Positions 7,531 to 58,781 of a DNA stretch of 64,000 nucleotides are shown in pieces. The notes below the pieces were generated by a model. The model made no database searches. It saw nothing but the letters and a program-made list of their open reading frames with translations, and was not told the origin of the DNA. The stretch is from Mobula hypostoma (Eukaryota): assembly GCF_963921235.1 (NCBI RefSeq), contig NW_026948187.1:7192001-7256000 (forward strand), in the 5' to 3' direction. Both the position numbers and the translations under genes were made by a program. Numbering within the stretch: the stretch's first letter is position 1; each line of letters begins with the position of its first letter.

Positions 7531-7544
7531 CCACTAGGGGGCGG
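7531..7544 (+). promoter_or_regulatory. CTCF-like motif
   Basis: CCACTAGGGGGCGG matches the CCASYAGRKGGCRS consensus at every position. Confidence 0.6.
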
Positions 7545-8585
7545 AAATGCAGTGAAGTAAAATTTAGGTTAGATTTTTCGAAGGGAGTGAAAGCGACCAT
7601 AACTTTTATAAAGCTGATTTTTTTTTCTTCGGCTGCGATGCCACAAGGGCTAGGAGACAGAGATAGAGGCTCAGGCAGAGAGAGAGAGAGAGAAAGTAAG
7701 ATATCGAATATGGAAGGCTACTCCATGCAGAACACAATGATTTTCATCGGGCGTGTGGCCCTCATTACACCAGTCCCTTGATTTCAATGAAAGGGAGGTG
7801 AATTGTGGCCTGTCTCCTTATACTCGCTGTGTAGTTTTCCTCAAATTCAAAGACTTGGTGGGAATAAAAACATCGCACATATTGAGCTCCGGGGGTGACG
7901 GTGATGGAGGGACGAAAGAGAGGGACAGAGGAAGACAGAGGGTTGTACTGATAATGAGATAGACACCAGAGGAGGGAGACAAACTATGTCAGCTTATCGG
8001 TGACTGAGTGGAGAGGATTCGTACCCAGGGAAAGGTAATAATCTTCAGACAGAGAGAAAGAGTGAATGAGAGAGAGAGAGAGAGAGAGACAGAGAGAGAG
8101 AGGAGAAAGAGAGAGACACAGTAACATGGGGGTGGGAGATGAAGAAAGCGTGAAGGTGGGACGGCGACAGGGAGATGTTGTCTGGTCAAATTGTTAGATC
8201 AGAAGCGGCACAAATCCCGAATCGTGTTGGAGTATCGATGGTGTTCGCTTTGAATCCTCCTTCTTTCACAGTTTGCTGTAGATTTCCGAAATTACAAAGT
8301 ATACGGAGCATTAAAACATCACTCATGGAGAGCTGAAGGGGTGAGGAAAACAGGGAGAGGGAGGGACGGGGACAGCGACAGAGAGACTGTATTGTGTGGC
8401 CATACTGGTAGACCGGAAGCTGCAGCCTCGAATCGGGTTGGAGTATGGAAGGGGCGTGGCCAACGGCTACGTCCTCAAATCCGCCTACGTCACTGGGATA
8501 CGTAACAAACCGGATGGAGGTGAATGAATTCGTCTCTGCCGCCCGGACCACTTTCATCACTGAGAGAGTAAACCCTCCAAGGAAG

Positions 8586-9224
8586 ATGTTTCTGTTTCTG
8601 CAATTCATCCTCGCCTTCCGCTGTGAGTGACAGCTCCCAGATTTTATTTTTTTTCATTCTCTGCTTCTGTCTACCTTTCACGTTCCTTCCACTTGCTTTC
8701 CCCTCCCATCGTGTCGGACCAATTCCTTCTTAATTTACTAGCCCTCGCGTCCGCAGACTATCTGCCCTCTGCCGTCGCCATTAAATTCCGAAATCCTCTC
8801 GAAATGTCCGCTTCTTCAGTCATCTTTTTTGCTTCCTTCAGTGCACCCTGTTTATCCACATCCCCATTGATCCGCATCTCCACTTCCTTTTTCCCCGTTT
8901 AGCCAAGCTCGTCTCTGTTTTGCAGACGCGGCCTCGGTAACGATGTACCAGACGCCGGCTTTCTCCGGAACTGCCGGTCAGAAGGTAACCCTGAATTGCA
9001 CAGTAGAGGGTAGTACCAGTGCTAATTACTGGTTGTACTGGTACCGACAATATGCGGGAAAGAGTCCGGAGTACATGTTTCGCTCGATAGCAGTTAATTC
9101 CGTCGAACCGGAGGGATTGGTCGACGGTTTTACGGCGGACAGATCGCAGAGCAAGGAGTTCTTCCTGATGTCCGACAAACTGGAGGCGATTTCGTCGGCT
9201 GTGTATTTCTGCGCTTGGAGTTAT
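8586..9224 (+). CDS. TRBV: V2: TRBV30-like V segment, family A, apparently intact
   Basis: Leader 8586-8622; V exon 8926-9224 (CTVEGSTSANYWLYWYRQ...YFCAWSY); 23-RSS follows. Confidence 0.93.
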
Positions 9225-9263
9225 CACGGCGGCTCAGAGTGACGGGGCAGCCGAACAAAAACC
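9225..9263 (+). other. 23-RSS of V2
   Basis: CACGGCG + 23 nt + ACAAAAACC. Confidence 0.9.
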
Positions 9264-10196
9264 TCGCTGTCAGGAGGGTCTGTGCTTTCAGCAAAAGAGG
9301 AAATACGATTCCTGTCAATCATCGGGTGGGAGGAGGGTCTATCTGTCAGGCGCTGCGCCGTTGCGGCCAATCAGTGTGAATAAGGGGCGGAGCTATTATG
9401 CCGTGGCGTTTAATTTCCTTCCCTTCTTTAACATTCAGATGGGGGAATATGATCGTCACTGCTCTCCCCCACTCCACCTTTCCTTCATTCTACAGCCTAG
9501 GGTCGGGGACAGGCGGATAGTTAAGAAACAGGGAGAGACTGGAGAACAGCTGTAGGACACATACCGCGAACGTCAGAAAACGGCGTCCTTGGAGGGAACA
9601 GAGAGATATTGATGTTCCCCAATCACTGAAGATGACAGAATATGAGGGTGTTGGTGGATCTGAGGGCAGGAACAGAAATTGTTTTGTCAGGCGGATTTTC
9701 GGGTGAGCACGGATTTGGGGTTGTCGGTGTATACGCCGATTTGCTGGCGCGTACAGATTTGGAAAATTTGGCGTATGTGAGCGTGCCAGCCGATATATAG
9801 GGACCTGCTCCGTGTAGAACCCGGGTTATTAAACGTGGTTTAGCTGCGATCTGGGAGGGTTTAGAATACAGATTCCAAATCTTTAGCTTGGAGTGTGAAT
9901 ATGTTCCCGGTGTGCTCCGTATGTCTCCTGTTTTCTGAGAGAGGAGGTCTGCGACATAGAACAGGCTAACAACGGGAGTTGCAAACGGACAAAAATGTCA
10001 CGTGGTTTAGAGGACGGTCATTATTCAGAGAGATTCGTGTTTTCAATAAAGATTTGGTGTGTTGTGGCCCCTCTTCTCATAGCGGATCTCCAGTATTCCG
10101 AAAATCCGAAGACGAAGAAGCATTAAAAGTCAACAATGAAGAGATATAGGGCGTGCAGAGGGCGACGAAGTTGAGGAGAGAGATAGATCGATTCAG

Positions 10197-10199
<3 letters not shown>

Positions 10200-55604: not shown

Positions 55605-56743
55605 AGGACTCCACCCGCAGAAGTAGACGGCCGACTGGTTCGGCAGCACGCCGGGAGAGATCAGAATGAACGTCTCGGCATCCGGTCTCCGGGCGGTGAA
55701 TCCGTCCACGGCCTCCTGAGGATAAACGGTGTTAGCACCCGCGGAGTGAAAGAGGTTGTGAATCTCCTTCCCGGGGTATTGTCTGTACCAGTAGAAGGCG
55801 TTACTGCTGCTGCTGCCCTTTCTGAGGCACCTCAGAGTCACACTTTCCCCGGGATGCTCGGTGAGGGCCGGAGGAGTCTGAAGGATGGCCTGCGGGCTCA
55901 CACCTGGAACTGAGACGGGGAGAAGGGCAAGGTCAATAATCTACAGAACGGGAGATGATTCGGGAAAACCGAGGAGCGGGGAGCGGCTGGAGTGTTGGGT
56001 TAGACGGACCGCGTAGAGAGGCGGAATACGTGAGGAGCGGAGGTGATACATGGGAATGGTCAGTAAAGTGAAGGATGGTTGGAGATCTGTGAAACAAAAG
56101 CTCTGGGTCCAGAAGACAGACAATACGATAGGTAGACTGATAAGACTGACAGGGGGAATCAGGTTGAGAGAGAGAGAGAGAGAAAGAGGGAGAGAGAGAG
56201 GGAGGGAGAGAGAGAGAATGTGAGAGAGACAGAACGAGACATAGGGACAATTTGAAAGGGAGGTATGTAATAAGAATTGGACAAAGGTAGAAAATGTCAG
56301 TTCAAGAGGGGAAGAGAGTCAGAGAATAAAGAAGTGCAGATGAAGACGAAGATACAGAGATAAAATATTGCCAGATAAATCGCGAAAATGAGGTAGAAAG
56401 ACAGAGAAAGGGAAGAAGAGTAATGGAGAAAGGGAGAGTGAGAAAGGGAGAAAGGGAGAGGGAGAAATGGGCAGATGGGTACAGACAGAGAATGGAAAGG
56501 GATGAATACGTCAAGAGGATAAGGAAGGGAAGAAAACAATAAAACATGTTTGGTGATTGAAATGCAATAGGGAAAAAACACAACAGTGGACAAAAAATAG
56601 GAACGGCATATAGAAAGGGAGATGGAAAAAAATGAGAGTGGAGACCGAGCGAAAACGATAGAGAATAGGTTGTGGAATAATTAAAAGAAGTCGGTCGACA
56701 TTTTACCATGAAGCCAGATTATCAACTGGAGCAACTGCAGCAT
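55605..56743 (-). CDS. TRBV: V15: TRBV30-like V segment, family C, apparently intact
   Basis: Leader 56743-56707 (MLQLLQLIIWLH); V exon 55903-55605 (CLRKGSSSSNAFYWYRQ...YFCGWSP). Confidence 0.92.
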
Positions 56744-57134
56744 ATTTCACTCCGAGGTCTGACTTCACGATTCCGAGAGGCCTTCGAGAGTGAAATGAGT
56801 GAGGACAGGAGGCCCCGCCCTTTCCGGCCTGATGGACGTCCGTCCTCACACTGCTATTGGCTGATTTGCTCCACCCGTTCTGAAGGGCGGGGTCAGAGTG
56901 GGTGAAGAGGAGTAGAGGGAGCGGCTTCACTGGCTGCGGGCCGAGCAGTGTCTGAGGCCGGCCGGGGATTTCTCTGAGGAGGCGCAAGGTGGTTTGTGAT
57001 GTGAGGAACAGAAGTATATTGATTTTTATTTCTCAGATCAGCCAGATAAGAAACAAAGCACATACCCAGGAAACCACGATTTAATGGTCAGAGGAGTGTC
57101 TCAGGGCGATTTGGACGGAGAAAAGCGACAGAGG

Positions 57135-57166
<32 letters not shown>

Positions 57167-57569
57167 TGAGAGAGAGAGGAAAAGAGGTGGGGGGATAGAG
57201 AGAGGGGAGCGAGATTGAGAGACAGAGAGATTAATGGAGAGAGAGGGGGAAAGCGGGAGATTGAGAGAGCTTGAAAGAGAAAGACGCGGCTTTAATGCGA
57301 ACAGTATTTTAAGGAAAGAACACAACAGAATAAACGCAATGTCAAACAGAGCTATTAACTAAAACTCTCACACATGAAACGAGATGTGAACACCGCGTCT
57401 GAAACGAATATCCAAGTGTAAACCGAATACCGCTGTACCTCAGAGTGAAACCACTGTTCTCACGGAAGGCCGAATGCAAGCCGGCAGCGTAACGTTGCTG
57501 TGCTTTGCTCGAGTATGCACAAGAGCTACAACGACAAGCAGAGAGTTAAATACCGCCGTAATGAAGTAA

Positions 57570-58781
57570 TTATCTGACCCGTACGTATCCACGAGCACAA
57601 TTATCGAATCTGCCGAGCAGACGAGTCCTGGTTGTGACAGGGCTCCCGCAACCGTCCTTTCTGTTGTTTGGTTCAACCCTACCGGACTCTCCTCTGTCCA
57701 GCTCTGCATTCTCACCATGACCCGTTGTAAGCAAGGACAACCTGTTGCACTTCCCGCAACACAACCAAGCTTCGCGTTTCCCTCAGGTATCGATACCGCT
57801 TCTCTGAGGCACTGCTTTACATCCTCGTGAATCTAAGAATACAAGGATTGTCGACTTTTGGATGGTTTCGGACGTTTGGCTTTCTTTTTGATAGAAGGAC
57901 ATAATGTGCAGGGGGACAGTATAGGGACCAAATAGAAATCCCCTTTGAGAAGCTATGGGTCACCTTCATTGCGTTGCGCACGGTGCTATAGCGCCCTCCG
58001 CTGGACGGATGTATAAAATCAAGTAAATTCTAACCACTTGCTCCCCAAGTAGAGTCATAAATCAGAACGGCACGGAGACTGGCCCAACCGTGCCAACAAG
58101 CGAACCGAAATTTCCCAATGCTACCCCCTCCATTTGCTTCCTCAAAGTTACTATGGCACTGACACAACCCCTTCCCCTGACAAATGCGCACATTTCTTGA
58201 GAGTAGCCTCATCAACGACTTATATAACTATAACATAATGTTTCATCTCCTCTGCTCAAAGTCTAGGGAAAAGGAGATGCGGAGTGGCTCAGGTGGGGGC
58301 GGGAGAGGGTGGTGTCATTACCGGAAGTCAGAGAAATCAATATTCATGCATCAGGCTGCAGGCTACCCAGTGGAGTATAAGACGCTGTTTCTCCGGCATT
58401 GTGTGCGTGTTACAAAGTGCATACTGCGAGACGATCAACATCGACTTGCACTGACAGCTCTTCTCCGCTGAGTCCACCCCCACTCCCGGCTCAATCAGAT
58501 CCCGTCACCATCCGCTCCTCCTGCAACACTTGCTCCCGCTCTCCTGGCGGCCGGGCAGCCGATCCATTGTTGGTTTGCCAGCAGTCCGGTTCAATAGCTG
58601 AAATATACTGTAAATGACAGCAATTATAAATAAATAAACGACTGCGCAGATCAACAAACAAACAAACAATAAATAGCATATAAATACATAAAAAGACCAA
58701 TGCGGAAATAAATAAATAAATCGTTAGATAAAGAAACACATATGTCATTAAACAGACAGACAGACAGATACAAGACACACA

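Follow-up and report, generated by a model that had tools for sequence, protein, structure and literature searches.

CTCF sites lying beside V segments shape V usage in the antigen-receptor loci of mammals. In the mouse, V arrays contain interspersed CTCF sites that are convergent with those flanking the recombination centre, and at Tcrb the joining of V to DJ proceeds through looping and diffusion, independently of the orientation of the recombination signal sequence (RSS) (PMC10772921). In the little skate, a batoid, MA0139.1 motifs in open chromatin mark the boundaries of topologically associating domains, with a bias in orientation (PMC10115646), which makes the mammalian CTCF matrix a reasonable probe for batoid genomes. 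No paper describing V-associated CTCF sites in a cartilaginous fish came up in a literature search. Here we describe a 64-kb stretch of the genome of the ray Mobula hypostoma (positions 7,192,001 to 7,256,000 of contig NW_026948187.1, assembly GCF_963921235.1; hereafter the window, in whose own numbering all coordinates are given), which is, by the pattern of its V exons, a dense T-cell-receptor (TCR)-beta-type V array and which carries nine CTCF-like motifs. Seven of these are copies of one box within an intergenic module. The reading that we favour, with about even confidence, is that this box is a functional element linked to the V cassettes, with CTCF as the best single candidate for its ligand, that the nine motifs fall into three classes of site, and that their common plus strand comes from cassette orientation and duplication.

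The ray motifs are like the V-associated CTCF-binding elements (CBEs) of mouse Tcrb and Igk in lying upstream of a V gene and in sense to it, in recurring through the array and in being copied with the cassettes; as in Igk and at Trbv31, the V genes stand on both strands, and hence the motifs do too. They differ from these CBEs in lying 1–2.3 kb from the leader and not in the promoter, in being putative, motif-defined sites, in the non-consensus G of the module core, and in that one of the five V families named in this analysis (VA, VB, VC, VD and VE), namely VA, has only an antisense neighbour. The motif at 14810, which lies 42 nt behind the VE nonamer and in sense, resembles the RSS-proximal CTCF sites of the proximal VH genes of mouse Igh; it is the only one of the nine ray motifs in this class, and the four families whose V exons end in CAWS have no post-RSS match above 4 bits. 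Finally, one motif-bearing sequence with many copies and an inherited orientation recalls the CTCF sites spread by transposable elements such as the rodent B2 short interspersed nuclear elements (SINEs), except that the ray module is not high-copy and has travelled by segmental duplication of V cassettes. The architecture is of a known kind, in an unstudied lineage, and a conserved cassette-linked CTCF-type box in one cartilaginous fish bears on whether V segments and CTCF have been associated since V(D)J recombination arose.

Both strands of the window were scored with a hand-entered copy of the JASPAR MA0139.1 counts, whose column sums and consensus look right. An earlier reading of the letters (the original prediction) had placed motifs at 7531, 14810, 21524, 34772, 37314, 39698, 49364 and 50661 on the plus strand and at 57991–58004 on the minus strand, and all nine were found there, with moderate to strong position weight matrix (PWM) scores of 14.1–21.0 bits (p 4e-8 to 6e-6), well above the composition-matched background. 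In first- and third-order Markov simulations of the window, 0.18–0.23 matches of at least 16.96 bits were expected and seven were observed, from four independent families; at 13.06 bits or more, the corresponding numbers were 1.4–1.8 expected and 12 observed. The window thus holds more CTCF-matrix matches than chance would give. The V coding sequence also produces strong matches: those at 1482, 1504 and 10871 are by-products of VD coding sequence, and a recurring 13.0-bit match corresponds, in antisense, to the codons of the residues that precede WYRQ in the VB exons.

The nine motifs are three unrelated things, namely seven module copies, the 14810 site and the 7531 site, and not one array of like sites. 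In a sensitive self-search of the window the motif-bearing sequence occurred seven times and no more, and the self-similarity map bears out the proposal that the motif was duplicated together with the V cassettes. The box is 27 bp long (ATCCATCCGT then CCAGCGGAGGGCGCTAT); it is preceded by a CANNTG E-box at 36–37 nt and followed by a second conserved block at 54 nt. Three lineages of copies can be told apart. Lineage 1 comprises 21524, 37314 and 39698. In the first of these, the box site at 21521–21539 (plus, 18.5 bits, p ~3e-7) is accompanied by the E-box CACGTG at 21488–21493 and by the second conserved block from 21578, and it lies in the longest form of the module (20713–22182, plus), between the leaders of VA1 (ATG 20181, minus) and VC1p (ATG 23707, plus). 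The other two box sites of this lineage are at 37311–37329 (plus, 17.9 bits; module 36746–37443) and at 39695–39713 (plus, 14.1 bits; module 38877–40850), the latter with a G to A change at a strong PWM position. Lineage 2 consists of the copy at 34772 (box site 34769–34787, plus, 15.3 bits; module 34637–35416; E-box 34736–34741). Lineage 3 comprises 49364, 50661 and 57991. The first of these (box site 49361–49379, plus, 17.9 bits; module 49286–49782) is in the left arm of an inverted repeat, and the last (57989–58007, minus, 17.9 bits) is in the right arm and identical to it over 301 bp. The repeat itself (46122–49928 / 61247–57441) is 3.8 kb long at 98% identity and brackets VA7 and VB1; it must have arisen by inverted duplication very recently or else be an artefact of assembly. 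The remaining copy (box site 50658–50676, plus, 15.7 bits; 50506–50745) is cut short at about 50745, where it is adjoined and truncated by a fragment (50844–52470) of a long interspersed nuclear element (LINE) whose reverse-transcriptase open reading frame (ORF) lies at 51568–52470 (minus). A further module copy without a box (40848–41436, plus) is a 97% copy of 57348–57936; it starts 55 bp 3′ of the expected box, at a (TC)n junction.

The order of module, T region, leader and VB or VC gene is the same in both orientations. This layout and the leaders show that the ancestral unit was a head-to-head V pair, with VA on one strand, VB or VC on the other and the module in the spacer. Two assembly gaps fall in the array. 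At the gap 42466–42597, both flanks recur in two inverted paralogues with their order and orientation unchanged; the anchors are 136 and 149 bp apart there and 170 bp apart here, so that the sequence from the 39698 box to VB0 probably forms one unbroken cassette. For the gap at 13601–13785 a spanning paralogue is lacking, and none of the motifs depends on this gap. A coding exon in the module was considered and rejected: the ORFs 20986–21423 and 39178–39597 (minus) have no Pfam match, and their frames diverge between copies. In the lineage-1 copies, a weak reverse-orientation match to the CTCF matrix (9.7 bits) lies about 70 nt upstream of the box (21451–21469, 37241–37259 and 39625–39643, minus), inside the third best-kept block of the module.

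One DNA run of this organism and three runs of a second one supplied contigs, which were aligned to 19100–22500 at 80% likeness or more. Summed contig depth was about 59 over the box bins (single contigs 13–15) and 114–138 over the V exon bins, as against 2e5–5e5 over the pieces at about 20540–20700 and 22233–22272, which are true interspersed repeats; depth here is not a copy number, and only this contrast of four orders of magnitude is used. Since the depth over the box is so far below that of the neighbouring repeats, a high-copy element is rejected, and with copies sampled down to 80% likeness, no Rfam family and no tRNA-like gene, an origin of the module as a genome-wide repeat or SINE is likewise rejected. 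The module is locus-restricted, with a handful of local paralogues, and has spread by segmental duplication of V cassettes. Short SINE-like pieces (20540–20700, 21722–21835 and 22233–22272; depth 1e3 to 5e5 in both ray species) flank the module and also lie inside it.

Evidence for a function of the box comes from its conservation. When six module copies were aligned, the mean pairwise column identity was 0.69; the best 27-column block was ATCCATCCGT plus the motif, with an identity of 0.92, a value that 0 of 5000 column shuffles reached. Between the three lineages, the box is 85–96% identical and the flanks 63–70%. Both CpGs of the core are present in all six copies, and the other CpGs of the module in two to five of the six. 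An argument for protection of the box from CpG depletion is weak, since CpG is barely depleted in the window (observed/expected ratio 0.81, against 0.84 for GpC). In the second organism, presumably a related ray, contigs cover the box, and the differences listed include 21470–21495 and 21556–21575, with none of those listed in 21496–21555; this is only suggestive of the box region being kept there. Judging from these comparisons, the box is very probably under constraint, and it is probably functional because it has stayed near-unchanged while the rest of the module diverged by 30–37%. On sequence grounds there is a good case for a functional, probably CTCF-type, element that belongs to the V cassettes. 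The box is most likely a working protein-binding site, with CTCF as the best single candidate, and might then serve as a barrier to cohesin, as a loop anchor or as an insulator that separates the two divergent V promoters; we infer both the CTCF binding and any looping role from the motif.

Several observations weigh against this reading of the box. At PWM position 9, A is found in 851 of the 912 matrix sites (93%) but G in every module copy, and two copies are altered at further strong positions, leaving them 14–15 bits; the matrix, moreover, was entered by hand and is not the official file. The best-kept stretch does not coincide with the CTCF core: it is displaced by 10 nt in the 5′ direction, and the 3′ end of the core is looser. 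VA, the commonest family, has no sense-oriented site, and its post-RSS region scores at most 4 bits. Gene conversion between paralogues could also have inflated the local identity.

Because the conserved block is offset from the CTCF core, another factor, or several, may bind it, and the alternative that survives best, possible though doubtful in our view, is that the box belongs to a composite lymphoid enhancer or to a bidirectional-promoter element of the divergent V pair, its ligands being factors different from CTCF. Such an element might comprise the E-box, an ETS-like GGAT that reads on the other strand within the 5′ half of the box, a zinc-finger site that is GC-rich and of the Zic, EGR or Sp type, and downstream a TCF-like CAAAG and a kappaB-like GGGGATTTC. 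The reach of conservation 10 nt 5′ of the CTCF core, with its fading over the 3′ end, would fit such an element, as would the G that all copies have in place of a near-invariant A of the CTCF core, the position of the module 0.75–2.3 kb from leaders on both sides, and the second block with its CAAAG and GGGGATTTC strings, which is kept equally well (0.91). On the other hand, these factor assignments are matches to consensus strings only; CTCF, the sole matrix scored, gives 14–18.5 bits. The E-box is likewise an uncertain witness. A CANNTG is present in all module copies as predicted (CACGTG in four, CAAGTG in one, or two with the inverted duplicate, and CAGGTG in one), and the variants at its centre were indeed seen; that the motif is selectively kept while its centre varies does not follow, for there are only two substitutions to judge from, the probability of the pattern by chance is about 0.1, and the centre changes E-box class (CACGTG versus CAGGTG).

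That the box has no function at all, being a chance CTCF look-alike in duplicated spacer kept by recent copying, gene conversion or a low local mutation rate, appears improbable. It is true that the internal copies of two of the three lineages are only 10–15% apart, with one pair identical, and that several matches of 13–18 bits in the window (1482, 1504, 10871 and the antisense WYRQ codons) are mere by-products of V coding sequence. However, lineages that are 30–37% diverged around the box remain 85–96% identical inside it, to a degree unmatched in the 5000 shuffles; a conversion tract would need to match the box in each lineage; and the second organism, as far as its contigs indicate, appears to keep the box as well.

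Two sites lie outside the module. The lone, near-consensus CTCF-type site at 7528–7546 (plus, 21.0 bits, p ~4e-8) is the best match in the window and has no paralogue there; it is in sense to VD2, whose leader (8586) is 1055 bp downstream. Kinship with the module was considered and rejected, as its only paralogous flank (15868–16136) stops short of the motif. The RSS-proximal site at 14807–14825 (plus, 18.4 bits) is also unrelated to the module and is in sense to VE, its core starting 42 nt after the nonamer of an RSS that is composed of the heptamer CACAGAG at 14729, a 23-nt spacer and the nonamer at 14759–14767. No RSS-proximal match to the CTCF matrix was found in the window behind the VA, VB, VC and VD genes, where the best score was at most 4 bits; the upstream or intergenic boxes form a second positional class beside the RSS-proximal one. 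Other strings are kept at these places. About 10 nt behind every VA nonamer there is a ACAGGAAGCAGGTG string (an ETS-like GGAA plus an E-box; 19161–19199, 25494–25532, 32200–32238, 35618–35656 and 45619–45657 on the minus strand, 54340–54400 on the plus strand), the VB genes have GGAAACAGCTGG at the same spot, and VC and VD have CAGGAAA further out, all with at most 4 bits for the CTCF matrix.

Relative to the V genes, the boxes lie in both orientations. The 21524 box is in sense to VC1p (2183 bp to the leader) and antisense to VA1 (1343 bp); the 39698 box is in sense to VB0, 2285 bp upstream of its leader (41983); and the minus-strand box at 57991 (58004) is in sense to VB1, 1261 bp upstream of its leader (56743). 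The boxes at 37314 and 49364 are antisense to VA5 (746 bp from the leader) and VA6 (2429 bp). The original prediction had several motifs 0.7–1.3 kb upstream of V leaders, and such distances are seen for 37314 (746 bp), 7531 (1055 bp), 58004 (1261 bp) and 21524 (1343 bp); the leaders in question at 37314 and 21524, however, are those of VA genes on the opposite strand.

The most ambitious part of the prediction was that these motifs form an array selected for orientation, which guides loop extrusion and RAG scanning toward D, J and C segments at higher coordinates and makes plus-strand V genes deletional and minus-strand ones inversional. There is mammalian precedent for such a system (PMC10772921), and all strong non-coding matches are on the plus strand except the inverted copy. 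Yet the seven module copies are of one descent and share their orientation through it, and only three independent sites are left, all on the plus strand, which is not significant; with paralogues collapsed, the non-coding matches of at least 8.2 bits number nine on the plus strand and five on the minus strand. The box also flips with the inverted VB1 cassette. That only the inverted-arm copy is on the minus strand, as had been noted, is true within the window and is partly an effect of its edge: a duplicate of the VB1 cassette that serves VB2 (62214–64000, minus) equals 55966–57781 at 87.8%, and its last part (63804–64000) matches module positions 21996–22183, so that the window ends about 210 bp short of where a second minus-strand box is expected. 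These figures lend no support to a uniformity of orientation beyond shared descent; in all three classes the motif is in sense to the VB, VC, VD or VE gene that lies downstream, and the common plus strand follows from tandem duplication and from the orientation of the VB, VC, VD and VE cassettes.

Motif polarity therefore says nothing reliable about where D, J and C lie, and the proposed location at higher coordinates finds no support in the window, where a search for D or J segments gave none. The 13 intact V genes divide into seven on the minus strand and six on the plus strand, and because both strands carry intact genes, both deletional and inversional joining would be needed wherever D, J and C lie; if a working D-J were on the low-coordinate side, it would be the VA and VB genes of the minus strand that join by deletion. 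The step from polarity to position is further weakened because mouse Tcrb joins its V segments regardless of RSS orientation (PMC10772921). With orientation inherited and V genes facing both ways, we consider the array selected for polarity unlikely. More generally, runs of same-strand motifs are expected from descent alone in tandemly duplicated V arrays and are unfit for inferring the polarity of a locus.

In place of a single scanning track, the favoured reading of the box as a cassette-linked element allows a wider proposal, which we offer only tentatively. Each TCR-beta V cassette of the ray might carry a sense-oriented CTCF anchor of its own, located behind the RSS in the family ending in CACSS and 1–2 kb upstream of the leader in the CAWS-type VB, VC and VD families. 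If so, the pairing of V segments with CTCF would date to the common ancestor of the jawed vertebrates, the anchor would be able to shift its place from one V family to another, and the outcome where V genes lie on both strands would be local domains of V pairs.

The V array itself was recognised by the full C...WYRQ...Y(Y/F)C pattern, which is intact in the 13 exons counted above; pseudogenes and fragments are present in addition. The exons are called V-set by Pfam, and a heptamer, a 23-nt spacer and a nonamer follow all of them. They end in CAWS, except in the single VE gene, which ends in CACSS (in the pattern of the array, YFC or YYC with AWS or ACSS). The assignment to TCR beta draws on VE, whose best single-domain matches in the PDB are TCR beta chains; the VA exon was also compared with the PDB by sequence, and there multi-domain antibody constructs dominate, so that the chain type is not readable from VA. 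VA is the commonest family, with six members on the minus strand (19161, 25494, 28854, 32200, 35618 and 45619), all intact except the pseudogene at 28854, and one intact gene on the plus strand (54040). VB has a truncated plus-strand gene (42839) and two minus-strand genes (55566 and 61644). The other families occur on the plus strand only: VC at 24113 (pseudogene) and 43604, VD at 1432, 8925 and 10799, and VE at 14434. Split leaders are present in VA, VB, VC and VD, with introns of about 340–800 bp.

Some minor features of the array were also recorded. The VD heptamer is the non-consensus CACGGCG in all three genes (RSSs at 1732–1770, 9225–9263 and 11099–11137), where the spacer is 23 nt and the nonamer perfect or nearly so; this heptamer and the CACAGAG of VE may be weak recombination signals. 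On the minus strand, 54866–55388 is an orphan copy (95.6%) of the region upstream of VC, with an intact VC-type leader (ATG 55063) that no V exon follows. Fragments of LINE reverse transcriptase (Pfam RVT_1) are found, all on the minus strand, at 51568–52470, 17053–17613 and 3044–4369, the last being a weak match. The leader intron of VA1 contains a 39-bp tandem repeat (19773–19986; 5.5 copies, 97% alike), across which contigs of the second organism skip 179 bp, meaning that the copy number differs between the two organisms.

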